Numbered from the stretch's first letter, positions 3,734 through 25,984 are shown. The stretch is DNA of 33,415 nucleotides from Macrostomum lignano (GCA_002269645.1 NIVC01000961.1:1-33415), one strand, 5' to 3'. Notes: generated by a model from the letters alone, not told the origin. Numbers and translations: made by a program.

Positions 3734-5885
3734 ATGCTGCGCCGGCAGAACCGACTCAGGCGTGAGTTCGTCTACAAGAAGAGCATTGAACAGCGGGACC
3801 AGCAGATTGCCGAGAGGAAACAGAAGCTGCGAGAGACTCTGGCGGCTGGTGGCAGCTCCCAGCTTCCTGACGCCATGAAGCGGCAGGCCCTGCGCCTGCA
3901 TCGGTGAGTTAATGACTCAATTTTGTAATTTAAATACATTCCCGTATTTGGCTTATCAACTGAACTTGAACACCGTCACCAATCTGCTGCACACTCGCTA
4001 AACACACCGTCACCAATCTGCTGCACACTCGCTAAACACACCGTCACCAATCTGCTGCACACTCGCTAAACACACCGTCACCAATCTGCTGCACACTCGC
4101 TAAACACACCGTCACCAATCTGCTGCACACTCGCTAAACACACCGTCACCAATCTGCTGCACACTCGCTAAACACACCGTCACCAATCTGCTGCACACTC
4201 GCTAAACACACCGTCACCAATCTGCTGCACACTCGCTAAACACACCGTCACCAATCTGCTGCCACTCGCTAAACACACCGTCACCAATCTGCTGCACACT
4301 CGCTAAACACACCGTCACCAATCTGCTGCACACTCGCTAAACACACCGTCACCAATCTGCTGCACACTCGCTAAACACACCGTCACCAATCTGCTGCCAC
4401 TCGCTAAACACACCGTCACCAATTTGCAGCCACCTGGACTGGGACGGAGCAGGCGGCGAAGACGCGGACCCGGACCTGGAGCAGAGCAGCCAAGATGACG
4501 AGTACCGCTGGGCCGGCGTAGAAGACCCCAAGCTGGTGCTGACAACGTCGCGCGATCCCAGCTCCAAGTTGAAGCAGTTCGCCAAAGAGCTGCGCTTCCT
4601 ATTCCCAAACTGTCAGCGAGTCAATCGGGGCAATTATCAAACTGCCGATCTGGTCAAAGCCTGCAAAGCCAACGCTGTCACGGATTTGCTGTTGGTTAGC
4701 GAGACACGCGGCGTCCCAGACGGTCTGATTGTGTCCCATCTACCGTTCGGTAAGCGCAAGTCTTGTGCTTCATTTTCCTATTTAAGACGATCCCGATCCC
4801 GGCCCAGCCCAAAAAAGGTCCCAAGATCACTTGCATCGCCCCAGACTCGTAAGTAAAATAGCAGAAAAGTAGTGACTCTCAAGATGTTAAAACGAGATGT
4901 CACAGTACAAAGAGTCGTCTAAGGACCTTTTTAAAGCGTTTTACTGTCGGAGACTCTGAAACGACTCTGGGGCCGTAGAGTCGCATCTTCGGCGTTTTAG
5001 TGGCACTCTTCCGTCGCTAAAAAGTTGCAGAAAAAGCGCTTTAGCGTCACTTTAGAATCGCTTGCACGTCACTTCTGAGACGCTCTGGACGCGTTTCAGT
5101 CAGAGTTACAGCCTACTCAGTGTAGCCTACTGAGTTACGAGTAGTAGAAAGTTAGGCGCCAACATATCGTTTCTTGGACAATTCTTTTGCGGCTCTTACG
5201 ATTTTACAACTTGCGTGACGTGATTGTGACGCAACAGTCGCCTCTCCGCCGCATTAAGCACGTTTGAGTCGTTAAAAAGTCACAAGAGTCGCACAAAAGT
5301 CCATAGACTGATGGTTAGACTTTTTAACAATTCTTGTCCCGATATGGTTTGGGATCCAATATCATTGAGTTCCATTGTTTCCCCGACTGTTAAGTTTTTT
5401 GAGCCAGTGATAATTGAAAAATGCAACAATTCATGCTCTGATCTGTGTTGCCCAATTGCACAGGCCCCACAGCGTTCTTCTCGCTGCACAATGTTCTCAT
5501 GCGTCACGACATGCCCGGGGTGGGCCACCAGCCGCAGGAGCTGCCCCAGCTGGTCATGCACGGCTTTGGCAGTAAGCTGGCCCAACGACTGGCCTCAATT
5601 CTCAAGCACCTGTTCCCGGTGCCCAAGCCCGACTCGCGCCGGGTCTGCTCTTTCACGATTGTTCAGCACGACTATGTAAGCTTCAGGCAGTACAGCTATA
5701 AGACCGTTTCTGGTCAACCTGAGCTCACTGAGCACGGTCCAAGGATGGAGCTGCAGTTGTACCGTATCGTCCAAGGACCGCTAGACGAGGTGGACACAGC
5801 TGAGACCGAGTTCGTTGCTAGGCCTTACATGAATACAGCTAAGAAGAGGCGCCTCATGGCGGCGGCTGAAGAGGCAGCTGCCTGA
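3734..5885 (+). CDS. IMP4: U3 snoRNP protein IMP4 (Brix-domain ribosome biogenesis factor), 3 exons
   Basis: Exons 3734-3903, 4430-4749 and 5464-5885 with GT-AG introns in compatible phases. The joined translation contains [77 protein letters not shown] and GPRMELQLY, collinear with IMP4. AATAAA at 5952-5957. Confidence 0.96.
3971..4423 (+). repeat. 34-bp minisatellite, 13 units plus a partial unit, in IMP4 intron 1
   Basis: Unit CACCGTCACCAATCTGCTGCACACTCGCTAAACA starts at 3971, 4005 ... 4378. Two units are 33 bp. The partial unit at 4411 runs into the acceptor TTGCAG (4424-4429). Confidence 0.98.
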
Positions 5886-6767
5886 TTTAAGACTCCCTGA
5901 TTCGCTGACATTCTTAGCTTATTGTCTTGGTTTCAATGCGCTTTTGCAGTCAATAAACGATTGTTTTTAAATAATGATGACAGCATTTTGTTTGATTGCC
6001 TTCATCTCTCTTTCTTAATTAAAATGTTCATGATACAGCCTTGTTTTTTATTATCATTTTGTGCTTTTAAGCTGTTTTTAGGGTCAGTGCGGTAGTGGCT
6101 CACCAAAGGGTTGTCAATGAGGTCATCTTGATAAGCAAACTGGATGTACTCCGTCCGGCTCCGTCCTAAACGCAGCTCCGTTCCTGCCGACATGGTCAGC
6201 TGGGCTGGCCATAGACTATAGCTAGAATCTTAATGCGCCTCTGTGCAAAGCCTTTCTAGCCGAGAAGGGAGCATTTTATACTACTCGGCTTGGACAGATC
6301 TAGCTAGGGTCGAAAAAAGCAGTTTCAAAGTGCATTTCACTTAATGCTCACTATCTAGATTATGCAGTGTGTACACTCGATATCTAGCAATAGACACTAC
6401 AGTTCACTTTAAAATCTGCAAACAGGCCTTTTTGAAATAGAACGCACTGCACTTCCTTAATACGAGTAGTGCATCATTTTATTGAAAAGTAAATCAGCTA
6501 CAACCATGAAAATTTTGCATACATCGGATTATGAGACTGGCGATGTCATCACAGAGAATGCTGAAACCGAGTCGCTGCATTCCATTGCAGATAAGTATGA
6601 CTTTTTTCACGCATTTTTCGTATGACCAGCGCTGCTGATCATGCTCGGCAGGAGCGGCTACTGTGCAGCTCATAACTTTTCTTTTACCATAGACTCCAAA
6701 AAATTACCATCAGTAAAGGTTGTTGGTCCATGGTCAGCTCTGCTGACTATCCGGCAGCTTACCACGT

Positions 6768-7717
6768 AGCATCCCATGCAGCAGTCTTGCAATCAGAAGC
6801 CAGTCACAGTCCACCACATAGCATCCCATGCAGCAGTCTTGCAATCAGAAGCCAGTCACAGTCCACCACATAGCATCCCATGCAGCAGTCTTGCAATCAG
6901 AAGCCAGTCACAGTCCACCACATAGCATCCCATGCAGCAGTCTTGCAATCAGAAGTCAGTCACAGTCCACCACATAGCATCCCATGCAGCAGTCTTGCAA
7001 TCAGAAGCCAGTCACAGTCCACCACGTAGCATCCCATGCAGCAGTCTTGCAATCAGAAGCCAGTCAGTCACAGTCCACCACGTAGCATCCCATGCAGCAG
7101 TCTTGCAATCAGAAGCCAGTCACAGTCCACCACGTAGCATCCCATGCAGCAGTCTTGCAATCAGAAGCCAGTCACAGTCCACCACGTAGCATCCCATGCA
7201 GCAGTCTTGCAATCAGAAGCCAGTCACAGTCCACCACATAGCATCCCATGCAGCAGTCTTGCAATCAGAAGACAGTCACAGTCCACCACATAGCATCCCA
7301 CGCAGCAGTCTTGCAATCGGTAGCCAGCCAGTCACAGTCCACCACAGCATCCCATGCAGCAGTCTTGCAATCGGTAGCCAGCCAGTCACAGTCCACCACA
7401 TAGCATCCCATGCAGCAGTCTTGCAATCGGTAGCCAGCCAGTCACAGTCCACCACATAGCATCCCATGCAGCAGTCTTGCAATCGGTAGCCAGCCAGTCA
7501 CAGTCCACCACATAGCATCCCATGCAGCAGTCTTGCAATCGGTAGCCAGCCAGTCACAGTCCACCACAGCATCCCATGCAGCAGTCTTGCAATCGGTAGC
7601 CAGCCAGTCACAGTCCACCACATAGCATCCCATGCAGCAGTCTTGCAATCGGTAGCCAGTCAGTCACAGTCCACCACATAGCATCCCATGCAGCAGTCTT
7701 GCAATCGGTAGCCAGTC
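6768..7717 (+). repeat. 52/56-bp minisatellite, 18 units, ending just upstream of the FMO start codon
   Basis: Unit AGCATCCCATGCAGCAGTCTTGCAATCAGAAGCCAGTCACAGTCCACCACAT in the 5' part. The 3' eight units carry CAATCGGTAGCC and are 54-56 bp. Confidence 0.98.
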
Positions 7718-7735
7718 AAAGTCTGAAACTCAAAC

Positions 7736-9808
7736 ATGCAGCAGTCGCAACAGCAGCCCAAGTCGGTTGCCATCATTGGCGCCGGAGTCTCAGGCCTGGC
7801 GGCGGCAGCCAGTGCCTTGCGCGAGGGCCTGGCGCCAACCGTGTTCGACTCGGCGCCAGGCCTAGGCGGCATGTGGGACCCCGACCTGCGGCCTTGTTGG
7901 CAGTCGATGCGAGTCAACGTGTCCAAGTTCAGCACGGTGCTGTCTGATTATCCATGGCCGCGAGAGGCGCCACTGTTCCTTAGTCAGGTGATTGTATATA
8001 TTTAATACGCCATGTATATCACGGCAGTTTAAGCAGGAGCCAAGGTGTGGTTTGAGCTTACGTCGTTGCCCAAAATGTTCCCCATTAGAGTCAAGTACAA
8101 AAAAGCGCTGTATTTTAACCAAACAGCGTACTTATTTAATAAAATGATTCACCAAATCAGTGTCTAAAAGTTCGGGGTCGGGTCGGGTTTTGGTACCGTG
8201 TTCGGGTTTGAAAAAATGTTCGGGTCGGGGTTTGGGGTTAACCGTCCCGAACACCCCTACTTTTGAGTTGGAACTAAAAAAGGTTTAGCATGGCTTTGTT
8301 TTAACCATTCTATCGCTACCTAGGCACACGTGTTTCTCCATCTCAATTCTAGAGACAATTATTTAAGTAGTTACGAGTATCGTGCTTCGATTGCGTTGTT
8401 TTGCAATCGGTTGTTTTATAACGCAATCCTGTTGGCAGTCGATGCTTGACTTACCAAGAACTCCGCTCCGAATTCCTTAGTTATTACACTTCTGACAGCA
8501 AAGTTTATGCACTTCGTATCATTACGCACTTCGCAGGCTTCGGTGCACGCGTACTTAAGAGAGTACGCCCGAACTCGAATCCCGGCCGACGTTATGCGGT
8601 TTGGAGTTCGCGTCGTCCGGGTTGAGCGCAACCCGAACGGCTCCGGCTGGTTGTTGCAGACGACAGCCGCAGGCGATGCTTCTGCAACCACCCGCCTGTT
8701 CGATTTCGTCATCGTGGCGTCGGGCTTCTTTGCCGAGCCGTCGCTGCCGGCTGGCCTGGAGCAGCGGCTTCATCAAGCTGGGGATGGCCTCGTCAAGGGC
8801 GTCCTGCACAGCAGCCAGTACCGCGGCAACTTCCAGGTGGCCAATCGTCGAGTTGTAGTTGTTGGCAGCTCGCTGAGCGCGTCTGAGATCGCCGCGGACG
8901 CGGCTCTGACAGCTAGCGAGCTGGTGCACATCGCGCCGCACGGATTCTGGGCGTTGCCGCGCATCATCGTGGCTCAAGCCAGCGACAGCTGCCCCGCTGC
9001 ACCAGATTTTGTGCCGCTTGATGTGGCGTTCTACCGGGCTGTTGAGAGGGAAACCATTGGCGAAGTCGTGAGTACAAAGCGATGAAAATTGAAAGTACAG
9101 TATACATGTAAGCATTAGACCAAGACAAACCTACTTACACTTGGTACTGAATATTAAGAAATTAGTTACCGCATAACCTGTTGTTATTCATCGTTATTAG
9201 CACGTAGTGCATCTTTTCGCGATCATTTTTCAACCTGTATAAGGGTTGGAAGTCTGAAAAGAAAACTATAGAGCTCCAGATCAGCCTGAGTACAAGAATA
9301 AGTGTAGTATTCTGACTTGGTCTAAACCAAGCATATAATGTACAATAGTTAGACAGCCAAACGTCCACGGGCGAATTTCGTAGACCCTTAAAGTCGCTTG
9401 CAAGTCACAAGGGCAAATGAAATTTGCATCTTCAGAAAATCCGCACCCCGGGGAACTGGGCCAAGATGTCGGCTTTCTTCGAGTCCGTCTGCGGTGACCG
9501 GCGTCAGCTGTGCTGCGGGTCCGTCACTGCCGACTCGCCCCAGTGGATTACCATCTCGGATCTGTACCACCAGCTGCTGGCCGCCGGCAAGATTCGACTC
9601 GTCTTCGGCCGAGTCGCTAGCCTGAGCTCTGACCGCCTGCGGCTGTTGAACTCCAGCGAGCCAATCGAGCTCGGGCCCGATGATGTCGTCATCCTGTGCA
9701 GCGGCTACCGGCCTCGACTGGACTTTTTGGCGCCTGACGTCCTGGCCGAGCTGCTACAGGCCAACCAAGGCCAAGGTGACTAACTGACTAACTAGCTACT
9801 GTAACTAT

Positions 9809-9906
<98 letters not shown>

Positions 9907-10298
9907 GACTAACTAACTGACTAACTAACTAAGTAACTATCTAACTAACTAACTAACTAACTAACTACTAACTAGGTAAATACTTTGGCTCAGACCTTGT
10001 CGCAACTCTTCAGACGATCGTCAATTAAATGACACCTTCTGCCCGCTGCTGCTGCACCAGTGCATTCTGCACCCGAACTTGCCGGGCCTCGCCTTCGTCG
10101 GGATGTACCGCGGTCCCTTCTGGTCAGTCATCGAACTGCAGGCCCGTCGCGTGGCCGCAGTCTTTTCCGGTTCGGAGCCAGCCCCCAGCCAGGCCGAGAT
10201 GGCCGCTGGGGTGGCCTCGGAGCTGCTGGTTCGGGACCAGCGGCCCAGACCGCAGTTTCCGCACCCAGATCTGGTGGGGATGTGCAACGATTTGTTTG
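7736..10298 (+). CDS. Flavin-containing monooxygenase (FMO-like, class B flavoprotein), exons 1-4
   Basis: Exons 7736-7987, 8537-9067, 9436-9775 and 10014-10298 join in frame through GT-AG sites. Motifs: FAD site IIGAGVSGLAAA, GLGGMW, FDFVIVASGFF, FMO-type GVLHSSQYR, NADPH site VVVVGSSLSASEIA, VILCSGYRP, LHPNLPGLAFVGMYRGPFWSVIELQAR and QFPHPD. Without further splicing the frame stops at 10324. Confidence 0.9.
9115..9325. mobile_element. Degenerate MITE-like element in FMO intron 2
   Basis: TTAGACCAAG (9115-9124) and CTTGGTCTAA (9316-9325) form a perfect 10-bp inverted pair that extends imperfectly inward for about 35 bp. TA lies at both termini. Confidence 0.45.
9778..9974 (+). repeat. (CTAA)n microsatellite with CTGA variants in FMO intron 3
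   Basis: Directly visible. It begins at the donor GTGACT (9776) and fills most of the 238-bp intron. Confidence 0.98.
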
Positions 10299-11054
10299 GT
10301 GAGCGAGACAGTGGGGCAGCATAGGGTTGATTCGGACTCGAGTCTGAGTATAAGTGAGGCCTGTTCTGAGCAGATAAAGTGCTCCGGATTCGAACCAGAA
10401 AACACCGGGCTCGAGGTCCAGGTGTGGCCGCATTTTTGATGCCTGGGGGAAGTGAGTAACTTTCCGGAGCAACAAAATAGAGCAGAAGCTACTGGTAAAG
10501 AAAACCCAAGTGAACTTGATTCCTTAGAGTCTCGAAATAAACGAATTTTGGAAGGTTCTCGCATTTTACTTGCCTGTAAAGGTGAAGACGACTCAGGCAA
10601 CGAGAAGCATTTGCGGTTGCTATCTAACTTCATTAACGGAAGCTCGGCCACATTACTTTGGAGTTCGTGCGCAGGTTCGCTTTCACAAGCTCGGAATGTC
10701 ACATTGTCGAAGAGACTAACTTCATAAGATCTAAAACCAAAAAATTAATAAACTTGAAAGCGATTAGCCATGAAAATTTCTACTATTGTTTCACACTGGC
10801 CCTACAAACCTGATTTTCATTCGATTTATCAAATTTAGTGAGTCATAAATTAATTTATTTCGCCAAAAACCGCTCCCTGAGCCCATTTGGGCGCACAGAC
10901 TTGATGAGAAACAGAGTTTCACAAAAAAGTAGAGGCCAAAAAGTTTTCGACGATTGGATTGCTTGTGCAACGCCTTGAGATTTTTCTTAAGACTCAAAGC
11001 GAAATTGGCGTTGCGTAACAATTGCCTCCTCCCTGGCTGCAGGCTGAGCGTCCA

Positions 11055-12680
11055 AAGCCCTCTGGGACCAACTAACTTAAGTAAGCATTCATTGAGCTTT
11101 CTGGAGATAATGAAGTTCAAGATCGAGCTGAAAAGGATCTGTCCAAGCCAGAAGCAGACCGAGGAACTGTTTACTGGTAATAAATTCTAGCCTCGACCGA
11201 TTGGCATTCTGCATACAGTCAAAGTCCATCGGCGGGGCGGACAACAAAGGATTTCACAGCGCAAACAAAAATAAATGGCGTGTTGACCCTATGTGAATTG
11301 AGCTAGAGTTTTCAGTCCGAGCCATTTCCCTTTACGTTGGGACTTACACGTAGAACTTTGAAATTCCTAGACTGCTGTGAACTGTTTATCGGCGCACCCC
11401 TTCTGAAGCTCACGAGTCGCTATTGTTCTTCAGGTCACGCTGTCTGGCTATCTGGCTAGAACTGCCTAGCGGTAGCCTTGCAGAACGGTTTTCTAGAAAA
11501 GCCTTCTAGAAAAGCCTTCTATATAGAACCGGGACGCTTCTATTAACCTGAGACCATCAAGAAAAAAAGTAAAGTGACAGTCTGAAGCGCAGCTAATTTA
11601 ATTGGATTAAGAAAGCCAAAAAAGTCTCAGAAATCTTCCAACTTTCGCTCGCTCGTACATATGAGTTGTGGGGACTTACTACTGGCGGGGGCACAGACGC
11701 GATTTGGCCGCGTGGCCCATCAATACTATGTCTCCAAGAAGTCCAACAGACCTGGAGAAAGCATGCAAAACTCAGCTTTTGAAGTTTCGAGCTTGTAAAA
11801 CGCCCCCCCCCGTATCCGGAAATAGGCCGGAGGCTTGTCGTGCGATTTTGCGATTGTGTGCCAAACCACAAGGCACAGAATGTATAGGAGCACACGCCTT
11901 AACATGAGAAAGTCAGAGCTGCTGTATGAGCTACTCTACGTGAGCGTGTGCCTACTACGTAAACACTTGCATGCAAAATGCTTCGAAAGCCCCCTCTGCG
12001 ACTTACTAATTTCAGTAAGCATCCATGAAGGTTTTTGAGGCTGGCGAAGTTCAAGATCGAACTAAAATGAATCTGTCCGAGCCAGGAGCTGACGGGAAAA
12101 CAGTTAACTGGCTTTTAAAAGCAAGTCTCAAGCAATTGGCATACTGCATCCAGTCAGAATCGATCGATCGCCTAGGTCAGACTTATGGCGGGGCAAACAG
12201 CCAAGGGTTTCGCACAGCGCAAACAAAAATAAATGGCTTTGACTATGCAAAAGTCGAGTTTTCAGCCTGCTGTGACGAGACACTTCCCTTTATAAGTTGG
12301 GACTTACATGATGAACTTTGAAATTCCCTTGCTTGTGAGTTACTTATCAATGCACCCCTTCTAAAGCTCACGAGTCTATTGTTCTTCGGGTCACGCCGTC
12401 TGGCTAGAACTGCCTTGCAGTAGCTTTTCAGTTATTGTTTTCTTAGAAAGCCCTTCACTCTAATCGAGATATGTCTGCAAGAAAACTTTAGCAGGTCTCT
12501 TTTAAAAAGAATACAAGGTACTTAGTACTCAGTCGAGTAGGTGATTTAAAAAGTCAGTTAAAAGTCGTTTTCTTTGTTTGCTTTTCAAAATGAAAGACCC
12601 ATCACAATATCAATAGTTATATTTCTCCAAAACCAAAACGCTTCTTTTAATCTGAAACCAGCAAGAGAAAGTCAAATGTT
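11055..12680 (+). repeat. Diverged direct duplication (about 11055-11580 versus 11987-12680)
   Basis: Shared collinear blocks include GAAGTTCAAGATCGA, CACAGCGCAAACAAAAATAAATGGC, TTGGGACTTACA, GAACTTTGAAATTCC, AAGCTCACGAGTC, TATTGTTCTTC and CTGGCTAGAACTGCCT, separated by indels. Confidence 0.85.
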
Positions 12681-13602
12681 TTAGAATAATGTGTTGCGGG
12701 GGTGTGCCCCTCTGACGATGATTATGATCGTTGATGTTTCTGTTGAATCAAATAAGTCGGAGGTTCGATTTGTTTCTCTCGATCTCTAACCTTCAACAAG
12801 ATTTTTATTACTAATCAATGTTAGTAGCAATTCCTAATAGGATATTGATCACGCAATTACGCAAATTTGTTAAGCAATTCAGTGAAAATGGAGCCACAGG
12901 CTACTTATCGATATTGTTGCACGAATTGACGTTTGTCCGGATTTATCTCTGTTAAATCAGGATATTAGAGTTCAGGCCGATTGTTGGGGCAAGCTAGCGG
13001 CGCAGTTGAGGAGGCAAAGAGGCGGAGAGCCGAGAACCGGGAAAAACTGGAGAGAGGCTTCATTCTCACTGAACGCTAGTATATATATGATTTCTATAAC
13101 GCATTTCATTGGTGTTCGCTTCACGCAATAGGATCTTTACTGGTGCACAAGCATGTGCTGTACTTTCCTGATAGAAAAACCTTCTGAAGTTCGCATTAGA
13201 CTAAAAAATAACATTGGGCATAACATGCTTAAATTAAGATCACTTCAAAAGGAAATTGACAGTCTGGAATGCAGAAAACTTTTTCGATTAAAAAAGCCAA
13301 AAAACAGTTTTAAAAATTTGCCACCTTACTAAGGAATACGAGCTAAAAACCCAAACAGTTTAAGAAATTTTCTAATATAATATTCATTGCAATGTCAAAA
13401 AATAAATTTCTGAAGAACCAATGCATCTCTCCTAAATGGATCATAAAACTATCAAGCAAATTAAAGTGAGGAAATAGAAACCCAAACGATGAAAGAGGAA
13501 AAGCACAGTATTCAGCTGTTAGCCTAATTGACCGACTCCATAGTCAAGAGCGATTGAACACTCGAAAAATTGTGTCTTGTATCTTCAAACTGCCTCCTTG
13601 CT

Positions 13603-15698
13603 TCACGCAGCCTCACTTGAAGGGCTGCTCAGTCCATTGCGGTTCAGTCTACGAAGGAATTGCTGCCTGCGAGCTGCCAGTTGCCGTAGCCGCCTGTTGT
13701 GCACTCGAATTCGGCACCGGATTGCCGTGGCCCGCTGAGCGAGGCGTCGGCGCTTCGCCGCGATGGCGCGGATTCGACTGACCAGATTGTCGCGTTGAAT
13801 ACGCAAACTGGCGTTGGTAGCGTTGACTCGGGCGCCTCGCTTTATGGCTTTTGATGAGGGCACCTTTGGAAAATGGATAGTTAATCATTTTCGAAAAATG
13901 AAAACTCCGACTTGTAAGCTCCTTATTGACAAGCGAATTCTGTATTGCCAAAGTTCAGCTAGCTAATGCTCAGTGCAACTCGGAAGGCTCCCTCTTTGCA
14001 ACACGTACCGTAAACAAAAAATTAAAAGTATTAGAACCAAAACTGTTGACGCATTTTTTCGACTAAAAATGGTCATCGTCAGAGCAAACCTTCTACTAAA
14101 TAGCATAATATGCTACGAGTATGTCTAGATACGTTTTTGGTTTTCTTGGGTGAAAATCGCGCCATTTCGTCCTGATAGTGGTCGAAATGCATTGATAATG
14201 AGGTGAGCAGTCTGTTTGGTCGGGAACTTTACTTCGGCTACTATTCAGGATCTTGCTTCGACATAAACTTAAAAGATGAGGGACAGAAGCTATCGGTTTG
14301 CAACATTTTAACGACCTCACGCACCTGTTTCTGTTTGGGTGCTTTGGTAAAAACTATGAAGCTTCCCAAAGTCCTCCTCTGTCCTGTCTCCGTTGCGTCA
14401 ATTAGCCGTTCAAGTTGTCGACGTCTTACGCGGAGTCGGAACAGCCTACGCCGCAAACGAAACTGCCGATGCCGGATGTAAATCTTGCGGGTCTTAAGTA
14501 TGTCTATTTTCTTATATTCGTAGCGCAGATGCGATTCAATGTGTTTCATTCGATTGTCGATTCGGTCAGCTAATGTCATGTGGGTTTTAACCTTTGGTTT
14601 CGGAGCAATCTTTAGCAATTCTACGTGTTCACGCAGCCCAAGTCTGGACAAAAGAGTACTGTACCTTGTTACTGCCTTGTGCATTTCTTTGTCATATTTT
14701 TTCTGATTAATCAACTCATGAGTCTTCATGGCGTTGAGCCTTTTCTGCCCAATGTTTTTCTTACTCTGTCGCAGTCGCGCAAGTTTTGTCTCGATATTGG
14801 CTACTTTGCGTCGAGAAAGCAGCATAGCTCTTATAAAATGCCTGAAATCAGCCATATAGGTATAAATCCGAGTAGCAAAGCGCGTCACATCCGCTCGGCT
14901 AGTCACGTCCAGGTGCCGACGACTGGAAATCGGATCGTCTTTTATGCTAAACCTGGCGAGCCGTCGCAAGTCGTATGGCTTCCATCTCTCTATGAATTGT
15001 TCCATGGGCCAGTATCGCTCATTGCTATCTGCCAGCTGAAGACGAACCCGCTTTTTGAGCAAAGCGATTCGTCTCCGAAAAATTTGCCGCCTTTTCGACA
15101 GTCGCCTAATGCGACGGCGCAGCGCTGCCTGTTGAATAAGCAGAATGCGCTTGGACGGCTGCTGGGAAGTCCGAACCTCAGTCTTTGTGATATTGGCAGA
15201 CTTACTCTCACCCAGCTTCATGCGAGCTCTCTCTGTCTGAGCAATGCTACTATGTTTAGCCAGAGCTGCCATTCGAATTTTGAGCTGTTTCAACCGTTCG
15301 TCCACGACTTGTTCGTGTCTTTTAATTCGATTGATCCGGAATCTGAAAAGCAGGGATCGCCTCATGTCGCGCAACCACGCTCTCTCCCCTTCTCGGAAGC
15401 GTTTGTTCCACTCGGTGACGGATTGGCTTCTGATGTGTAGCTTTCTTGGCTTGATGACCCCGTTTTGCTTGCGATAGCTGCTAGCTGCTTTGGTGCCTTT
15501 CAGCTGCTTCTCCAGCATATTTCTGAGCTGCGTTATCTGTCCCAGAAGATTCCTGTTTTGCTCAGAGGCTTGAGATCGGGCTTTCCTGAATTCCCGAATC
15601 AGCACTCGAAACTGATTGTTTGCCTGCACTCCATTCGACTCTGGAAAGCAGTGGTGCGGATGGCCATCTAGGATTAATTTCGTATTTTTGTGCCTCAT
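13603..15698 (-). CDS. Unknown ~544-aa highly basic (Arg/Lys-rich) predicted coiled-coil protein, nested antisense in FMO intron 4
   Basis: Open frame of about 1.5 kb (14241-15755) with first ATG at 15698. A phase-0 donor CAG|GTGCGT at 14325/14324 joins a phase-0 acceptor (ATTAAC...TATCCATTTTCCAAAG|) at 13864/13863, adding an 86-aa exon of the same Arg-rich character. About 127 of 504 residues of the long ORF are R or K (hand count). No recognisable family. Confidence 0.75.
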
Positions 15699-16346
15699 AT
15701 CTATACCGTCTGAAGAGTTGATTCGGGAGGTGATCAGTCTCCCGAAAACTCCCACTTCCAGACACTTAAGCCTGGGAACAAAATAAAGTGATCACTTACT
15801 TTTGCGGGCTCCTCTTCTGTGTAGTGCAGGTTCTCCGAGCTCGTTTCTTCTAATCTTCTTCTTCTCCGGAGGAATCTTCTTGAAGTCTCGAATCGGCCGA
15901 ATGAGAGCGTGACGATCAAATCAGGCGACGTCGCAGTATTTCTCGAATGCAAATCAATATAGGCCTTAAGCTCAGTAATCAATATCAACGATGCGCCCTT
16001 GTAATAAAATCAACTTTCTGTAATAATCACGAGGACCTCCAAGAGGGGCGTCTTCTTCTAGATCTAACGGAATCGGAGTCGTGTGCTCCTATCGGTTAAT
16101 CTAGGATAACCAAAATCAATCAATCGATAATCCTCTAAGGGTATCGGAATCGGTCCGCCGATCCTATCCAATCCCTTAGGAAAATGGGAGGCCTCAAATT
16201 CAATGAACTCAGTCCAAACGACTGGATAGTAGCGGCCGGCAATAAATCGCTCTCAAAATCAATAACAAAGGCTCGAGCAACGGCTCACCAATTGGTTTAT
16301 CTCTCTCTCTCAGAGATGTAGCCTCGCTTAGCTGTTCCAGCAAGCT

Positions 16347-16402
16347 CCAAGATCTTTAGAGGCTGCTCCGAGTCCCAAGATCTTTTGAGGCTGCTCCGAG
16401 TC
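16347..16402. repeat. 28-bp tandem duplication just downstream of the proximal minus-strand TATA box
   Basis: CCAAGATCTTTAGAGGCTGCTCCGAGTC (16347-16374) and CCAAGATCTTTTGAGGCTGCTCCGAGTC (16375-16402), one mismatch. Confidence 0.9.
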
Positions 16403-16430
16403 TGAGATTTTTAGCTCGGATTTTGGCTTG

Positions 16431-16438
16431 TATTTATA
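16431..16438 (-). promoter_or_regulatory. Candidate proximal TATA box (TATAAATA) of the nested gene
   Basis: TATAAATA on the minus strand. There is no ATG on that strand in the roughly 730 nt down to ATG 15698. Plausible UTR donors lie at 16288 (G|GTGAGC) and 15799 (A|GTAAGT). Confidence 0.5.
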
Positions 16439-16823
16439 GGAAACCTTCTTGAAGAACAGATTATTTTTAGTAGGTGACAGTTTAGCGCTTTGGAAATTTG
16501 ACCCCTATGGAATACATTAGGTTTGAGCGTCAATACCATATTCGGAGTTCTAAATTTAAGTGTTGCAAAAGGTGGTCATTTGTTGCTTTCGTGGTCTTTA
16601 AAAATAGAGTGTGACAATTTGCAGTTTTTACAACATTCAAGTTTTTCGCATTTTTATGTTTCTACTTACAGTAGTCTGCTTGTAATGCCTCTGGAGATCT
16701 CTACACGTCCGTATATAATCAATAGCAATTTTTTTATGAGACTGAGATGACTTAAATGGGTCCAGTCGCAGTAAAAATCGAAAAAGGATATATTGCGAAA
16801 GTTCAAGCAAGTTGAAAATTTAC

Positions 16824-16932
16824 CAGAACGTTTGCCGTGTTTAATGGCTGCTCCGCTGCAAAACTGGAAAATCTCTCCGAAAATCAGCAAGCCAGCGAAA
16901 ATCAATAGATGAGCTGCTCTAATCTGGACCAT
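16824..16932 (-). CDS. Signal-peptide-encoding exon (MVQIRAAHLLIFAGLLIFGEIFQFCSGAAIKHGKRS)
   Basis: ATG at 16932, hydrophobic core LLIFAGLLIF, small-residue cleavage region CSG/AA, then a GKR site. Phase-1 donor G|GTAAAT at 16824/16823. The downstream partner exon is uncertain. Confidence 0.55.
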
Positions 16933-17080
16933 CTCAACTCGTTTTGTTTAGCAGCTCAATACGCAAAGTAAATGTAGAGTCAATTCTTCCACTTTCTTCA
17001 GTTTTTCCACTTTTGCACACTGCTGGGAAATTAAAGCTAAAGAGTCTGAGTTTGGGCAGTTCTACTTTATTCGTTATGGC

Positions 17081-17137
17081 TATTTATACACGGCGAGGAT
17101 CGGGTGGAAGCGCAGGGGGTGTAATTCATTTCATTGG
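17081..17137 (-). promoter_or_regulatory. Candidate distal promoter: CCAAT box plus TATAAATA
   Basis: Minus-strand CCAAT at 17137-17133 and TATAAATA at 17088-17081, about 150 nt upstream of ATG 16932. Confidence 0.55.
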
Positions 17138-17462
17138 TTGACTGAGTTGATTAAAATACTAATACTGCTGGAAGGGTAGCTGCTCGTAGCTTTATCCAGT
17201 TTTAAATATTGACATATTTTGGAGTTTGAAATTTTATCTTTACAAATTTCGCACATACATGCATATGGGTTTAAGTTACGCTACGAGCGTATCTCCTTGT
17301 ACGCTCGTAATTTGATTTCTGAATACGTGTAGGTTGTGAAAACATTTTCAGAGCGTTTACACAGCCTTTATTTTTTATTTTTCCAACTGAATTTACTTAC
17401 AAATACTTTAATTTCCACCCTCTATCATCCCCTCTGACCAAACTTTCCTCACCATCTATAAG

Positions 17463-18019
17463 GCAGTCAGCCCGCCTTCAGCAGCCACCTGCTGGCCAAC
17501 GCGTACCGCCGCGGCGGCCCAGACCCCGACGTGTCGGCGGAGCTGGCCGCCGTCTGCGCCGACCCGGACGGCAGCTTAGCGGCCTCAGCCATCGCTCGGG
17601 CGCTGCACTCGACTCGCTGGCAGTTCTGTCGACGTCGCCAATCAGACGGTACGGTTACAGAGGCCGAGAAAGAGGAAGGCACGGCGGAGTTTTTCGGCTC
17701 TCTGGACGATGATCCGGGACGCGGACTGACGCTGCAGTACCGAGAAAGTCGTCCCGCTGGCCAGTGGCTCTTCCAGTTAGCATTCAAGAAGCTGCAACCA
17801 GCCAGCACGCTGAGCCTGTTGAACAAGCCGGAGGGACTGCCACTCTGTCTCCGACTGAGCAGATCGACCGAGGGCTGGCTGGCCGAGGCCTTTGGCTGGC
17901 GGTTCTGCTTCGCTTTCCGGGGAATACAGCTGGAGAGGTTCTCGCTGCTAAGGGAAGAGGCTGAGGGCTACTGCAGGCTAGCTGAGTACCAGCCAATGGT
18001 GTTACTGAGGAATATCTGA
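17463..18019 (+). CDS. Terminal exon 5 of the FMO gene, DUF6314-like C-terminal domain
   Basis: GC-rich 185-codon exon with no ATG near its 5' end. It is preceded by CTGAC, a long pyrimidine tract and AG (17461-17462). Its phase 1 matches the FMO donor at 10298. The five exons total 1965 nt, or 655 codons. AATAAA at 18134-18139. The domain assignment comes from recalled motifs only. Confidence 0.7.
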
Positions 18020-18212
18020 TGGCTAGGTTCGTGGATAGACTAAATGGACCAATAGGGTAGCATACTTTTTTGTTTTTTTGATTAGTAGCTACAGAACTTT
18101 TCCGCGATATCACTACCTTTCTTTTGATTAGTCAATAAATTAAGAATCGGTGATTGATAAATTTGTCGTTCGAAACTGCATCTTTCGCGTGTTCGGTGTG
18201 TACCCATGATTC

Positions 18213-19602: not shown

Positions 19603-22600
19603 ATGGTGAGTTGTCTGTCTTCTTTTGAAATGATACAATCTGATGTTTTTTTTCAACTTAAGCTTAACAGTACCGTTGTAAATTATGTGGGCCAGGCCTC
19701 AGGCCAGGAATTTTGTCCCTATCTATAGTAGGCCTAGGCTATTATGATCAAGTCGTCAAGAGGTTGTTTTTGAATATGGCATTCTGGCAGCTGGCACAAC
19801 AAGCATTAAGTTTCGGCAGCAAAAAATGATCATGTTGGGGAGTAGAGATCTATGACATGTTAAGATAGGCCTAGGTCTGCAAAAAAGCTTCAGTGTAAAT
19901 TTGGGTTTTTTAAGATTTCTCTCTTCTCTCCTCCTTTATCTCTATCATCTTCTCTTGTCTCTTCCCTCTTTGTTCCTCTCTCCTCTTGTCTCTGCCCTCT
20001 TCTCCTCTTTCCTTTCTCTTGTCTTTGCTCTCTCAGTTCTCTTCTTTTATCTTTGCTCTTTACTCTCTCTTCTCTCTCCTCTCTTCTCACTCTACTTTCC
20101 TCTCTCTTAACACTTCCCTCTTCTCTCCTCTTTCCTCTCTCCTATCTACTCTTTCCTGTCTCATCTCTTCTCTCTCATCTCAAATTTATACTCCTATTTA
20201 TTATTTCTCTTCTTTTCTCTTTTCTATCAATTCTCTTGTCTTTTCTCTATTCAGCTATTCTCTTTACTTTCTCTTCTTACTCTCTCATTTGTCATGTTAT
20301 CTCTATGCCCTCTTATCTCTCTTTTCTTCCTTCCTTTACTCTTTCCCCTCTTCTCTTTTCTCTTTTTCTCTCTCCCTTTTCTCTCCTCTCTTGCTATTCT
20401 CTTCTTCCTCTCCCATTTCTTCACAATTTTCTTGTGATTTAAATTCACTATTTAAATTTAAACTTATATAATTATAAAATAAATTAAACTTAATGTGAAA
20501 ATTTCCATTGTGTGACTAATTTAGTAGGATTGTATTGCATTGAATTACTTTTTTATAAATCTTGCTTTTACAAACCATGTTGCATTGCCTTGATTTGCCA
20601 ATTGCCACCCACTATTAAACTGCTACAAAGTTTGCCTATACAGAGGGCCACACTCAGGAAGGTGTACATTATGGCGGAAAATTCCGGCGCACATCCATGA
20701 AAAATATGCGCAAAGTGGTGCACACGGCGCACAACAAAGGCTTAGCAAAAGTTTTTAGCACATAATGGTGCATAGCAAAACCTGATTAGAAAAATTTAAC
20801 TCACAATGAGTCACCTAAATGTATAATCTGCATATGCAGTGCATAAAATATGCTTTAAGATTACATTTTTCTAAGCATATCAATAAAAATTGTTGTTTCT
20901 TGGTAAGTGAAACAAATAATAAAATTCAAAATGGGATTTTAACGTAAAGTTAAAGCTATTTTTTTTGAGAATTTTCTACGTGAGCTAAAAAAAGCAAAAG
21001 TTTTGAGTTAAAAAAAGCCTACATGAGATACAAAAATTTATCCGTTTTTTAGTTTTGTTTTAATTGGACTTTTACCGAGTTTTTAGTGCTACGGCGCATT
21101 AGTTAGCGATGTATTTGTCAATAAATGAATGTACACCTCGGCGCACAAATTCATATTTTAGCTTCGTGCACAGCGCACACCAAAAATACGCTAAAATATG
21201 TTCCCGCGCACACGTGACACCTTCCTGAGTGTGGACAGAGGGCAGGGGTTAGAATTTTTCACTAAACTGTCATGGCTTAATGTAGCACATGCTATCTATA
21301 AATAAAGTTATTCTAAAACATTGTCATATTGCCATATAAAGAATTGTTAAGATATTATAACCTAGAGAAGAATTGCTAAGAAGTCTGCTTATAAGAGGTC
21401 AAATCATAGGATAAATTACTAAAATATCAAGACTAAGAGGTCAGAGGCTGTGTTGTCTTTAATTATTCAATTCTTTCTTGGCTTCCCAATATTGCATTTT
21501 GCAATTAAATTAAGTTTGAATTTACCTAGTTTATACATTTTGTCATGTCTACTATTATTAGTACATTATTTATATCTAACAAATGATAAGGTGTTTAAAA
21601 GTGAGAAAAAAGAATAGCCTTACAGTCTGATTTTATGCTAGTAGCATATATTGTTTATTGTAGCAACTATACTAACATGTATCCTACCTACCTATGGCAG
21701 CTACCAATATGCCTATAGGAAACAGCTGCTCCAATGGCTAAAACCATTGAAATATAAAGATGTAAAAAAAGAAGCCATTGTTTTGCTAAAAAAATTGAGA
21801 CAAGGTCAAAAAGCTTTCAACCCCTGTACCCTGCATTGAAAAGTGAAAAATTCATCTTAACTTCAGCCTCTACTATCCAACCGCAGCGTGGGAATCTTGT
21901 TGAAATTGCTAAAAGCATACTAGCAAACCTAAACCTATTGTAAACCTGTATTGTACTGTATTGCAAACCTATTCTACATTGGATATTAATGATGAAAGCT
22001 TTAACACTTTGCCCTACAATATCATGGGGGAACTTTTGCTACTAGATGGACTGAATTATAAAACATTTCCAATATGTACAGCACCTGTCGAATCGCAGAC
22101 TGCGCAACTCAACCAACCACTCTATGGCACCAACCGCACAACTAGGTGAACTTTACTGTTGGCCAAATTCGCTCCATGATGGACAACAAGCGGAACATCC
22201 GCAACATGTCCGTCATCGCCCACGTCGACCACGGCAAGTCGACGCTGACTGACTCGCTGCTGTCCAAGGCCGGCATCATCGCCTCGGCCAGGGCTGGCGA
22301 GACCAGGTTCACGGACACGCGAAAGGATGAGCAGGAGCGGTGCATCACCATCAAGTCGACTGCCGTGAGCATGTACTACGAGCTGAGTGAGCCTGACGTG
22401 AATTTTGTCAAGACCCTGCAGGAGGTCTCGAAGCGCAGCGACGGAACTGACGAGTGTGGCTTCCTGATCAACCTCATCGACTCGCCCGGCCACGTGGATT
22501 TCAGCTCGGAGGTAAATTGGCTTTTTCATTTTCCTTACACCTCGTTGGACCACGAAACCTTATTACTTTAACTCCTGCAGGTGACGGCCGCTCTGCGTGT

Positions 22601-25600
22601 CACCGATGGCGCCCTGGTCGTCGTGGACTGCAACTCCGGCGTGTGCGTGCAGACGGAGACGGTGCTTCGGCAGGCCATCGCCGAGCGCATCAAGCCAGTG
22701 CTGTTCATGAACAAAATGGACTGCTCGCTGCTGACGCTCAAGAAAGGCAAGGAGGATCTGTACCAGCAGTTCCAGCGAGTCGTGGAGAACATCAACGTGA
22801 TCATCGCCCAGTTCGGCGAGGAGGGCGGCCCCATGGGCAACATCTTCGTGTCGCCGGAAAAGGGCACCGTCGGCTTCGGCTCCGGCCTGCACGCTTGGGC
22901 CTTCACGCTGAAGCAGTTCGCCGAGATCTACGCCTCCAAGTTCAAGATCGAACCGGAGAAGCTGATGAAGCGACTGTGGGGCGACAACTTCTACAACACG
23001 GAGACGAGGAAGTGGGTGAAGACTCAGGAGAGCGACAAGTGCGTCCGGGGCTTCATCCAGTTCGTGCTGAACCCCATCTACCAGGCAAGTGTTGCTTCAG
23101 TACACCTTTCATATTATTGTTAATGGCTTGACAGTATGATCACTTTATACTGAACCTGATGATCTAGCTTTTCTGGCGGAGATTACTTTGTATTATTTAT
23201 TATCGAAAGTTTTCATTTTCTCGCTCCGTCTGTAAAACCTGCGCATGATGACCTTATACTGCCCCAGGCTGAGAGAAATCTTACTTAATGAGGATTCAGT
23301 CTGTCTGATTCGCAGCAGGTAGTTATTGTTAGTTTGAGCTTTGCGAATACTTTTTTATTGCATGGTTTCGGTCAGTTCTCTGGGATTGCTTCTCCGCGAT
23401 AGCGAAAATTCACTTTGTGCCATCTGCTCCACAGATGTTCGAAGTAGTGATGGACAAGCCTATCGAGGAGGGCCTGAAGCTGGCCGAAAAGCTCGACATC
23501 AAGCTGGACGCTGAGGAGCGCGAGCTGAGCGGCAAGCCGCTGCTCAAGGTGATGATGCGCAAGTGGCTCCCAGCTGGCGACACCCTGCTGCAGATGATTG
23601 CCATCCACCTGCCGTCTCCCGTGACCTCTCAGCGCTACCGCATGGAGCTGCTGTACGAGGGACCCCATGATGACGAGGCCGCCATCGGCATCAAGACATG
23701 CGATCCGAAGGCGCCGCTCATGATGTACATCTCGAAGATGGTGCCGACCTCCGATAAGGGCCGATTCTACGCCTTCGGTCGGGTGTTCTCCGGAGTTGTG
23801 AGCGCCACCAAGGTGCGAATCATGGGCCCCAACTTCGCGCCGGGCAAAAAGGATGACCTGTTTGAGAAGAGCATCCAGCGCACCATCCTCATGATGGGCC
23901 GCTACACCGAGCCTATCGAGGATGTACCTTGCGGCAACATCTGCGGTCTCGTCGGCGTCGACCAGTTCCTGGTGAAGACCGGCACCATCACCACCTACGC
24001 CGCTGCGCACAACATGCGCGTCATGAAGTTCAGCGTGTCGCCCGTCGTTCGCGTCGCCGTCGACTGCAAGAATCCGTCCGACCTGCCGAAGCTGGTCGAG
24101 GGTCTGAAGCGCCTGGCCAAGTCCGACCCCATGGTGCAGATCTACAACGAGGAGTCCGGCGAGCACATCGTTGCTGGCGCTGGCGAGCTGCACCTGGAGA
24201 TCTGTCTGAAAGATCTGGAGGAGGATCACGCCCAGATCCCGATCAAGACCGGTGATCCCGTTGTGTCTTACCGCGAGACTGTCACTAACGAGAGCAACCA
24301 GGTTAGTGGCCTAGATCTTCTGTGTAGTAGTTAGACCATTAGCTACTGACTGTCAGAATTAGCTACTGACTGTCAGCATTAGCTACTGAGTACATGAGCA
24401 TTAGCTACTGAGTACATGAGCATTAGCTACTGAGTACATGGGCATTAGCTACTGAGTACATAAGCATTAGCTACTGAGTACATGGGCATTGGCTACTGAG
24501 TACATGAGCATTGGCTACTGAGAACATAGGCATTGGCTACTGAGTACATGAGCATTGGCTACTGAGAACATAGGCATTGGCTACTGAGTACATGAGCATT
24601 GGCTACTGAGAACAAAGGCATTGGCTACTGAGTACATGAGCATTAGCTACTGAGTACATGAGCATTAGCTACTGAGTACATGAGCATTAGCTACTGAGTA
24701 CATGAGCATTAGCTACTGAGTACATGAGCATTTACTACTGAGAACCTAGGCATTGAATACTAAGTCAGCATATCAATAACCGTCGTCTCTTGACCCCTCT
24801 AGACCGTGCTGTCAAAGTCGCCCAACAAGCACAACCGGCTGTACATGAAGGCCCGCCCTCTGGACGAAGATCTCTGCAAGGACATTGACGATGGCAAGAT
24901 CGCGCCCCGCCAGGACGCGAAGGACCGCGGCCGCATCCTTGCCGACACCTACAGCTGGGACGTGACCGAGGCTCGCAAGATCTGGTGCTTCGGGCCGGAC
25001 ACCAACGGTCCCAACCTGGTTGTTGACGTCACCAAAGGTGTGCAGTACCTGGCTGAGATCAAGGACAGCGTTGTAGCCGCTTTCCAGTGGGCCACCAAGG
25101 AGGGCGTTTTGTGCGACGAGAACATGCGCGGCTGCCGCTTTGACATCTGCGACGTGACGCTGCACACCGACGCTATCCATCGCGGCGGCGGCCAGATCAT
25201 CCCGACTGCTCGGCGCTGCTTCTACGCCGCCGTGCTGACCGCGGAGCCGGCCCTGCTAGAGCCGGTGTACCTGTGCGAGATCCAGTGCCCGGAGAACGCT
25301 GTTGGCGGCATCTACGGTGTGCTGAACCGTCGGCGCGGTGTTGTGTTCTCCGAGGAGCAGGTGAGACTCTTCACACTTGTTAATGGATCTTCTCGTTAAT
25401 CTTCATATCATCTAATTCGTTGTGAGCTTGGCAAAGTGACTGGTCGTTTTTTTTGGACAATCTGAAGTTTCCTGCTTGAGCAGTTTCGAGCTTGTGAAGT
25501 ATCGAGCTTGAGCAGTTTCGAGCTTGTGAAGTATCGAGCTTGAGCAGTTTCGAGCTTTTGAAGTATCAAGCTTGAGCAGTTTCGAGCTTGTGAAGTATCG

Positions 25601-25984
25601 AGCTTGAGCAGTTTCGAGCTTGTGAAGTATCGAGCTTTTGAAACGCCCCTCATAGACTGAGAGTGCAATTTTTTGTTAGTGGCGTCCTATTCCGATTTCC
25701 AATCGATCCCCTCCACAACCTCCCTCTGCCAGGTGTCCGGCACCCCGATGTTCATCGTGAAGGCCCACCTGCCAGTTAACGAGAGCTTCGGCTTTACCTC
25801 GGACCTGCGCCAGGCCACAGGCGGCCAGGCCTTCCCGCAGTGCGTGTTCGACCACTGGCAGGTGATGCCTGGCGACCCCCTGACCGCCGGCACCAAGCCC
25901 AGCCAGATCGTGCTGGACACCCGCAAGCGCAAGGGCCTGCAGGAGGGCATCCCGCCGCTGGACCGCTTCCTGGACAAGCTGTGA
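19603..25984 (+). CDS. EEF2: Eukaryotic translation elongation factor 2, 6 exons, about 849 aa
   Basis: Exons 19603-19605 (ATG only, inferred), 22146-22511, 22581-23084, 23435-24301, 24803-25360 and 25733-25984. Motifs [47 protein letters not shown], the diphthamide loop [15 protein letters not shown], and a C-terminus ending FLDKL. AATAAA at 26408-26413. Confidence 0.98.
19917..20430 (+). repeat. Degenerate CT-rich low-complexity tract in EEF2 intron 1
   Basis: About 510 bp that is almost entirely C and T on the + strand. The overlapping L/S/F-rich and R/K/E-rich ORFs are compositional artefacts. Confidence 0.95.
20648..21234. mobile_element. MITE, 587 bp, perfect 18-bp TIRs, 8-bp TSD, in EEF2 intron 1
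   Basis: TIR CCACACTCAGGAAGGTGT (20648-20665) and its reverse complement (21217-21234). ACAGAGGG is duplicated at 20640-20647 and 21235-21242. GCGCACA motifs recur near both ends. AT-rich core with no meaningful ORF. Confidence 0.9.
24337..24772 (+). repeat. 22-bp minisatellite (about 20 units) in EEF2 intron 4
   Basis: Unit GCATTAGCTACTGAGTACATGA with variants. The first two units are about 20 bp. Confidence 0.97.
25474..25639 (+). repeat. 32-bp tandem repeat (5 units, 16+16 dimer) in EEF2 intron 5
   Basis: GCTTGAGCAGTTTCGA plus GCTTGTGAAGTATCGA, with units at 25474, 25506, 25538, 25570 and 25602. Confidence 0.97.

Follow-up and report, generated by a model that had tools for sequence, protein, structure and literature searches.

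Does the gene for a flavin-containing monooxygenase (FMO) in the flatworm Macrostomum lignano end with its fourth exon, or is it completed by a fifth exon that lies some 7 kb further downstream? The question is raised by nucleotides 1-33415 of contig NIVC01000961.1 (assembly GCA_002269645.1), a stretch of 33,415 nucleotides (nt) referred to here as the window, in which an earlier note had proposed that a distant orphan exon supplies the C-terminus of the FMO and makes of it a fusion with a domain resembling DUF6314. Our analysis points to a native, multi-copy FMO-like gene of five exons as the likely content of this locus, with an mRNA that joins position 10298 to position 17463, a C-terminal domain that would descend from DUF6314 and be kept as a structural add-on or with its constraint relaxed or altered, and an origin shared with rotifer genes.

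Gene model, terminal exon and the exon 4/5 junction

The gene was rebuilt from the sequence as five exons, which together comprise 1965 nt and translate into 654 amino acids (aa), with zero internal stops before the TGA at 18017-18019. The features on which the model and its alternatives depend are as follows:

7736-7987, + strand: exon 1 (aa 1-84), with the ATG at 7736 and, at aa 15-20, the Rossmann motif GAGVSG for binding flavin adenine dinucleotide (FAD); donor CAG/GTGATT, phase 0; rotifer tblastn match at E 7e-27
8537-9067, + strand: exon 2 (aa 85-261), FMO core, with HSSQY, a remnant of FxGxxxHxxxY, and GSSLSA at aa 194-199; acceptor ...CGCAG/G, donor GTC/GTGAGT
9436-9775, + strand: exon 3 (aa 262-374 plus 1 nt), with LCSGYRP, a variant of the ATGY motif; acceptor CTTCAG/A, donor AAG/GTGACT, phase 1
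10014-10298, + strand: exon 4 (to aa 469 plus 1 nt), with LHPNLPGLAFVGMYRGP, ELQAR and QFPHPDLVGMCNDLF; donor TTG/GTGAGC, phase 1
17463-18019, + strand: exon 5 (aa 470-654 plus TGA), a linker and what appears to be a diverged, eroded DUF6314 barrel; GC at third codon positions (GC3) 0.74
10299-17462, + strand: intron 4 (7164 nt, GC 0.43), with a nested antisense gene, a direct repeat of ~450 nt and the read-through stop
10274-17470, + strand: alternative in-frame intron, donor CTG/GTGGGG, acceptor GTCAG/CCC, giving 643 aa without VGMCNDLFGSQ
10322-10324, + strand: read-through TAG, giving a 477-aa FMO-only product that ends in GERDSGAA if the exon 4 donor is unused
10536, + strand: AATAAA inside intron 4, a pattern match after the read-through stop
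18134-18139, + strand: AATAAA, candidate poly(A) signal of the full-length mRNA, 115 nt past the stop, by pattern only

All exon boundaries are GT..AG, and the intron phases are 0, 0, 1 and 1. Introns 1-3 measure 549, 368 and 238 nt, next to which intron 4 is unusually long because it is filled by the nested antisense gene and by repeats. Across it, the phase-1 donor TTTG/GTGAGC meets the acceptor ...CTTTCCTCACCATCTATAAG/GC, whose AG (17461-17462) is the first past a pyrimidine tract. The donor, acceptor, intron length and stop-free protein of 654 aa were all recovered where the earlier note had placed them, and the strings it had read (LLANAYRRGG, AIARALHSTRWQFCRR, GTAEF, LQYRE, FCFAFRG, LHPNLPGLAFVGMYRGP and QFPHPD) are all found in the product. 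When the donor of exon 4 is unused, translation ends seven codons on, at the TAG. Exon 5 has a TAA in frame directly before its acceptor and no in-frame ATG until its final 8 codons; with no start of its own and a stop abutting the acceptor, it needs an upstream exon and is not a free-standing conventional open reading frame (ORF). It still looks coding, because its GC at the three codon positions (GC1/2/3 0.64/0.52/0.74) is the same as that of exons 1-4 (introns have GC 0.31-0.43), because it is open for 185 codons, and because it is also open in a paralogue from UniProt (A0A1I8H8E1, here P0189). A tblastn search of the window, intron 4 included, with nine relatives and the model itself matched the five exons only, and found no second FMO or DUF6314 copy and no missing barrel segments elsewhere.

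Homology, more than the match of phase (for which the chance alone is 1 in 3) or the open frame (185 codons at 63% GC, p ~0.005), is the strong evidence that exon 5 is no product of chance. The 654-aa model can be aligned over 98-99% of its length with proteins of the bdelloid rotifers Adineta vaga (655 aa), A. steineri and Rotaria sordida, in which PF00743 (FMO-like) precedes a PF19834 (DUF6314) domain that lines up with exon 5; the order of domains is the same, which bears out the proposed fusion. The C-terminal 180 aa of the rotifer proteins match the window only at 17489-17998 on the + strand (tblastn, E 3e-8 to 2e-6). Hidden Markov models (HMMs) of the relatives' C-terminal domains, built with the query left out and compared with shuffles, also recognize the exon: a model of 9 sequences scores it at 22.0 bits (E 6e-9 for a single sequence; best of 2000 shuffles 8.0) and one of 39 sequences at 31.1 bits (E 1e-11 for a single sequence; best of 5000 shuffles 9.6). 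The confident part of the match covers the linker helices and first strands (AIARALHSTRWQF...GTAEF...LQYRE), a weak match occurs at FCFAFRGIQLERF, and the invariant W, R, G.A.F and Y.E residues of DUF6314 are kept. Judged by this homology, exon 5 is a real, diverged DUF6314, and it very likely belongs to the FMO gene.

Two observations pull the other way. Pfam's own DUF6314 model (PF19834, gathering threshold 23.1 bits), against which the earlier note had suggested checking the last exon, gives no match at E <= 1 with either the full protein or exon 5 alone, while the five closest fusion relatives scanned score 52-102 bits. The barrel is also eroded, as the earlier note had suspected of its HxC and GPxKDY motifs: an 8-residue deletion takes out GEHLCxxD, GPxKD has become EEAEG, and of the 27 positions with a conservation of 80% or more the barrel retains 12, where controls from rotifers, fungi and algae retain 27-29 of ~30. 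Such erosion could mean decay, and the exon is then perhaps no longer a functional part of the protein.

The exact junction was weighed with an HMM of the fused family, built from 33 fusion proteins, again without the query. The 654-aa model (10298 to 17463) scores 510.4 bits, the 643-aa product of a junction from 10273 to 17471 scores 495.0, and the 477-aa read-through scores 493.0. The 25 nt between the two donors (10274-10298) are open and encode VGMCNDLF, which matches the relatives' conserved YVGxxNxLA; coding them adds ~15 bits. The splice consensus of M. lignano consists of a GT[G/A]AG donor and an enriched CAG acceptor (PMC8629364), to which the donor at 10298 (GTGAG) conforms and that at 10273 (GTGGG) conforms less well. 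On these grounds the mRNA most likely joins 10298 to 17463, and we hold moderate confidence in that precise pair of sites. Several points count against it: the acceptor of exon 5 is AAG and not the enriched CAG, with two CAGs in the next 8 nt; each of the four UniProt models stops at, or splices from, the weaker donor at 10273, and none uses 10298 (P0001, P0187 and P0188 end at or beside 10273, and P0189 splices from it to an acceptor at 17466/17467); and no NCBI (Mlig_3_7) protein for this FMO turned up, though the nested gene on the same contig has one, an absence that may reflect low expression. Neither the 654-aa nor the 477-aa sequence is present in a collection of 15 billion proteins.

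The same gene and the same fusion could be produced by the other junction, from the CTG/GTGGGG donor at 10273 to the CAG acceptor at 17470/17471. This keeps the frame (643 aa) and employs an acceptor that fits the enriched motif (PMC8629364); P0001 stops exactly at 10273, and P0189 takes that donor with an acceptor neighboring the CAG, in a copy with a 1-nt frameshift. We nonetheless consider this junction unlikely, given that its GTGGG donor deviates from GT[G/A]AG, that it skips the 25 open nt encoding the VG..NDL of the conserved motif, that its model lies 15.4 bits under the 654-aa model, and that the UniProt models, derived from an earlier assembly, could be artefacts of gene prediction.

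The best protein match to the 654-aa model is the M. lignano entry A0A1I8J6U0 (100% identity over exons 2-4), and at least four near-identical copies occur among the UniProt entries of this species. A0A1I8H8E1 (P0189, 534 aa, "Flavin-containing monooxygenase") is a near-identical paralogue or allele, with 6 aa differing from the window among 357 in the FMO part and 6 among 175 in exon 5, and with a model that joins the FMO exons to the DUF6314-like exon. Unlike the gene in the window, it is a fragment without exon 1, part of exon 2 and the last 8 aa, uses another donor/acceptor pair, has an apparent 1-nt frameshift in exon 4, and carries no DUF6314 annotation. It reads QRPSRSFRTRIC where the window at 10240-10273 encodes QRPRPQFPHPDL, the pattern of a 1-nt deletion with a compensating donor and acceptor; the copy may truly be frameshifted, or the gene predictor may have patched an indel of the assembly. 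Because this entry already links the FMO exons to exon 5, the join itself is not new, and the annotation of another assembly or copy shows the link independently. What the present model offers is a correction: the public M. lignano models are fragments, the 654-aa protein is without an entry in the protein collection, and a long intron with a nested gene can conceal a terminal exon.

The locus could alternatively make two products, an FMO mRNA that ends in intron 4 (477 aa; AATAAA at 10536) and an exon 5 that is a decaying relic or is separately trans-spliced to the spliced leader (SL). The M. lignano SL ends in ATG (PMC8629364) and, by sequence arithmetic, would read M-PAFSSHLL... in frame if joined to the AG at 17469-17470; moreover, a 7-kb gap with an independent gene lies between the FMO exons and exon 5, erosion of the barrel is heavy, exon 5 is missing from three of the four UniProt models, and many bacterial relatives are FMO-only, at ~490 aa. 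However, the exon is open for 185 codons with host-like GC3 both here and in P0189, whose model links it to the FMO exons, and a strong consensus donor lies exactly where the phase fits. In addition, AGTCAG at 17465-17470 misfits the trans-splice motif [T/C]TNCAG (PMC8629364), while the fitting CTTCAG (17476-17481) is out of frame, and we regard two products as quite improbable. SL trans-splicing onto the acceptor 17462/17463 was rejected separately, since it would be out of frame for the barrel; the AG at 17469-17470, with its misfit to the trans-splice motif, is the only one that would serve.

The FMO module and the fold of DUF6314

By its conserved positions and motifs, the FMO module of the 654-aa protein is intact. 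A Pfam scan matches PF00743 at 111.3 bits (cut-off 22) over aa 9-228; the relatives' matches reach ~aa 450, the flatworm protein aligns with these relatives throughout, and its FMO half keeps 64 of the 70 positions that are at least 80% conserved among them. The N-terminal FAD-binding GxGxxG is GAGVSG. The second dinucleotide motif, for reduced nicotinamide adenine dinucleotide phosphate (NADPH), is GSSLSA, not the textbook GxGxxG/A, and represents a GxSxSA variant typical of the fusion clade (most of the aligned fusion proteins have it, for instance as GGSMSA or GDSLSA). FMOs are identified by the motif FxGxxxHxxxY/F and possess an ATGY linker. In the flatworm protein the region of the former reads LVKGVLHSSQY against FPGKIIHSSDY, so that the invariant His175 and Tyr179 are kept, F is replaced by L and the Gly is displaced by one residue; ATGY has become CSGY, and ELQAR and FPHPD are also present. 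The product is predicted to be a class B flavoprotein monooxygenase, dependent on FAD and NADPH and acting on a small substrate.

The earlier note had set this protein apart from typical animal FMOs, which end in a membrane anchor, and the comparison agrees. Canonical animal FMO1-5, such as the reconstructed ancestral mammalian FMO2 (PDB 6SEM), share the N-terminal FAD/NADPH module (96 bits over aa 9-227), but similarity to the flatworm protein ends at ~aa 230: the ancestral mammalian FMOs score 82-96 bits, confined to the first 227 aa, against 415 bits over the full length for the A. vaga protein. The last 185 aa contain no C-terminal hydrophobic anchor (maximum 19-residue Kyte-Doolittle mean 0.91) and have the beta-barrel domain instead. 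Among the source-named hits listed in either homologue search there is no canonical animal FMO, most hits carrying no name. A canonical animal FMO was rejected as an identity for this gene, on account of the N-terminal-only similarity and the missing anchor.

The fold of the C-terminal domain was approached through the intact A. vaga DUF6314, for which the AlphaFold2 model has a predicted local distance difference test (pLDDT) of 91.8 and shows ten antiparallel strands after a pair of helices. In the PDB its fold is matched best by the S-type phycobiliprotein lyase CpeS (4TQ2, template modelling score (TM) 0.56) and nitrobindin (2A13/3WJE, TM 0.54-0.57), followed by Rv2717c, the OssO spirocyclase and lipocalins. 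Nitrobindin and CpeS are 10-stranded calycin barrels that resemble the rotifer model in fold (TM 0.54-0.57), but identity is only 7-12% and the Foldseek E-value ~1e-3, a resemblance of fold and not family membership; the model thus places DUF6314 among the calycin-type ligand-binding barrels at fold level only. For the flatworm protein, the full-length model is poor (mean pLDDT 65, from a 9-sequence alignment), and over aa 491-647 the same helix-helix-10-strand layout is predicted at a pLDDT of 40-76, a low confidence that must be set beside the Pfam result and the erosion described above. No paper mentioning DUF6314 was found in the literature searched, nor was a paper found for PDB 8Z12, the best solved-structure match.

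With respect to mechanism, the FMO half is probably catalytically competent and would form a C4a-hydroperoxyflavin and oxygenate a small nucleophilic or hydrophobic substrate. The barrel fold of the intact relatives suggests a small pocket for a hydrophobic ligand, which the barrel would probably bind or present. The flatworm barrel is without the His, Cys and Asp of HxCxxD and without GPxKD, and this loss of signature residues suggests that the ancestral ligand-related role has been lost or changed, with the barrel probably retained as a structural add-on or with its constraint relaxed or altered. The combination of an intact oxygenase with a decayed barrel would make the two domains separable, and characterization of DUF6314 could draw on the flatworm enzyme as a "barrel-dead" control supplied by nature.

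Relatives and origin of the fusion

An exhaustive scan of 1.84 billion representative proteins retrieved 331 at E <= 1e-30, none of them above 43% identity outside the protein's own cluster, and 46 of the best 150 representatives carry DUF6314 next to the FMO domain. A second search with an alignment profile returned essentially the same set and one new protein. The fusion is found in bdelloid rotifers (A. vaga, A. steineri, A. ricciae, R. sordida), in green algae and streptophytes (Mesostigma, Pleodorina, Chlamydomonas incerta, Closterium and the liverwort Calypogeia) and in fungi (Botryobasidium, Jaapia, Laetiporus, Rhizina, Morchella); among bacterial and metagenomic relatives, many have the FMO alone. 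"Microbial-type" is too narrow a description for an architecture that extends to streptophytes, green algae and bdelloid rotifers. Among the animals seen here, only M. lignano and the bdelloid rotifers carry this fungal/algal-type fusion, with a derived indel in common. The FMO-DUF6314 family is functionally uncharacterised in the literature searched, and this gene is a further member, already partly in UniProt. One metagenome protein from JGI (P0015, 651 aa) has the domains in reverse order (DUF6314 at aa 11-146, FMO at aa 154-634), from which it follows that the pairing of FMO and barrel arose or was rearranged more than once.

The bdelloid proteins (A. vaga I4U23_000478, 655 aa, and those of A. 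steineri, A. ricciae and R. sordida) resemble the flatworm protein in length and domain order, are collinear with it over 98% at 33-41% identity, and share with it a one-residue insertion before the invariant Trp of DUF6314. They differ in that their genes are intronless and their DUF6314 is intact (Pfam 92-102 bits in the three Adineta and Rotaria proteins scanned; 27-29 of ~30 conserved positions). The fungal and green-lineage fusions (Botryobasidium BOTBODRAFT_59266, Jaapia, Laetiporus, Morchella; Closterium, C. incerta, Mesostigma, Calypogeia) have the same two-domain architecture at 30-36% identity, but are without the insertion of the animal clade, have other intron positions or none, and keep HxC and GPxKDY.

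In a neighbor-joining (NJ) tree of 147 FMO domains, the flatworm sequence is sister to an 8-sequence clade that holds all the bdelloids, a grouping recovered in 192 of 200 bootstraps (96%) of a 72-sequence subset (the fusion clade with its 47 members, and 25 further sequences). The insertion before the Trp occurs in the flatworm, in all eight members of that clade and in two rotifer-like fragments; P0054 has it independently, and ~27 fungal, algal and other sequences are without it. The gene falls in the fusion clade of fungi, green algae and rotifers, and does not nest within canonical metazoan FMOs. We infer that it belongs to the fungal/green-algal/bdelloid FMO-DUF6314 clade, that it and the bdelloid genes go back to a single origin, and that flatworms of this lineage have had it for a long time. 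Detracting from this conclusion are the tree method, which is neighbor-joining on simple distances, and the raw identities, which are close (33-41% to rotifers vs 30-36% to fungi and algae). The next neighbors of the animal clade are green algae, in only 45 of 200 NJ bootstraps.

Gene structure and composition bear on how the gene arrived. The rotifer genes are single-exon, those of Closterium and Calypogeia have one intron each, at positions not used in the flatworm, and Botryobasidium has no resolved intron by tblastn; the four flatworm positions (after aa 84, 261, 374 and 469) have no counterpart in these relatives, a comparison of little power given the relatives' few introns. The earlier description of the gene as intronised accords with the single-exon rotifer genes and with flatworm intron positions unshared with alga or liverwort. 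The gene probably has a long history in the flatworm lineage, which it either entered or never left, and would have acquired its four introns and the host's codon usage since then. The alien index is ~-89 with rotifers counted as Metazoa (E 1e-118 vs 4e-80) and ~+134 without them (from a rescaled PDB E-value for a mammalian FMO), in a comparison where most database hits are without a taxon name.

The following genes share the contig:

22146-25399, + strand: elongation factor 2 (EF-2), several exons
~5445-5885, + strand: Brix-domain ribosome-biogenesis gene
32406-33008, + strand: MFS-type transporter fragment at the contig end

These neighbors bear on whether the FMO exons derive from a microbial contaminant or a fresh insertion, as might be imagined from their closest named non-animal relatives, which are fungi, algae and bacteria. 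All four introns of the FMO gene are spliceosomal, with splice sites of the M. lignano type, and these introns (GC 0.31-0.43) contain flatworm microsatellites; its GC3 of 0.75 lies in the native range of 0.70-0.86 (EF-2 0.79-0.86, Brix 0.71); the contig also carries the EF-2, Brix and MFS genes, and an annotated M. lignano gene lies within intron 4; and there are at least four near-identical copies among the UniProt entries. Contamination or very recent transfer is extremely improbable and is ruled out by genomic context and composition, and the host-like GC3 and four introns are compatible only with an old transfer, if any.

The horizontal acquisition put forward as possible in the earlier note stays conjectural; the composition is host-like, and any transfer must have been old and of one origin with the rotifer genes. 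These data do not tell an ancient horizontal capture apart from differential loss of an old eukaryotic gene. Vertical descent of an FMO-DUF6314 gene dating back at least to opisthokonts and Viridiplantae, with loss in nearly all animals save Macrostomum and the bdelloids, is a real possibility, somewhat short of an even chance. It is in keeping with the occurrence of the fusion in fungi, chlorophytes, streptophytes and two spiralian animal lineages, with the grouping of those two lineages, with the host-like codon usage and four introns, and with a like argument put forward for further class B monooxygenases whose distribution among animals is patchy (PMC4498894). It requires, however, that the gene was lost independently many times in Metazoa; the rotifers, a group noted for foreign genes, have intronless copies, no intron position is common with algal, liverwort or fungal genes, and the NJ tree sets the animal clade beside green algae and not fungi, with weak support. 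More tentatively, and with a low expectation on our part, a single ancient event common to the macrostomid flatworm and the bdelloids (capture in a spiralian ancestor followed by near-universal loss, or transfer between the two lineages) may have been followed, in the flatworm copy, by the gain of four introns and decay of the ligand-binding barrel, the oxygenase being kept. If true, this would be an unusually old, traceable domestication of a foreign gene, with domain-specific loss of function, in a regeneration model animal. The locus offers a tractable test case for ancient transfer vs differential loss.

At two loci of the rotifer clade, an opposite-strand RRM_1 gene lies directly upstream of the intronless FMO-DUF6314 gene (L002, ENA ERZ25071726, RRM_1 at 5315-5656 on the - strand; L003, Logan SRR23617210, 3895-4977 on the - strand). 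The arrangement suggests conserved local synteny among these presumed rotifer sources, and is not seen in the called genes of the A. vaga locus (L001).

Contents of intron 4 and repeats around the gene

Intron 4 and the flanks of the FMO exons hold the following features:

15518-14322 and 13866-13606, - strand: two exons of a nested antisense gene inside intron 4, NCBI BOX15_Mlig010351g1 (P0190), 484 aa
11058-11500 and 11992-12440, intron 4: diverged direct repeat of ~450 nt, 76-94% identity in blocks
6761-7723, + strand: 52-nt tandem array of 18 copies with 95% matches, abutting the FMO start codon
9779-9974, FMO intron 3: (ACTA)49 array

The protein of the nested gene is very rich in K and R, coiled-coil-like and without a Pfam domain, and the relatives found for it are M. 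lignano proteins only, one of them labelled "CHAD domain-containing" in UniProt. The ~450-nt repeat is probably a dispersed repeat. The 12-mer CATGCAGCAGTC occurs 17 times in the 52-nt array and once at the real start (7735), and the first codons of the FMO (MQQS) are accordingly part of the last repeat unit; a long 5' untranslated region would carry up to 17 upstream mini-ORFs from this array, each reading MQQSCNR before a stop. Introns and intergenic DNA of the window are in general rich in short tandem arrays, with further examples at 3970-4427, 24375-24742, 25463-25642, 26659-27413 and 30386-30835, with units of 34 nt (x13.5); of 22 nt (x17) and 32 nt (x5.5), both within the EF-2 gene; of 22 nt (x35); and (AGTTAGTC)58.

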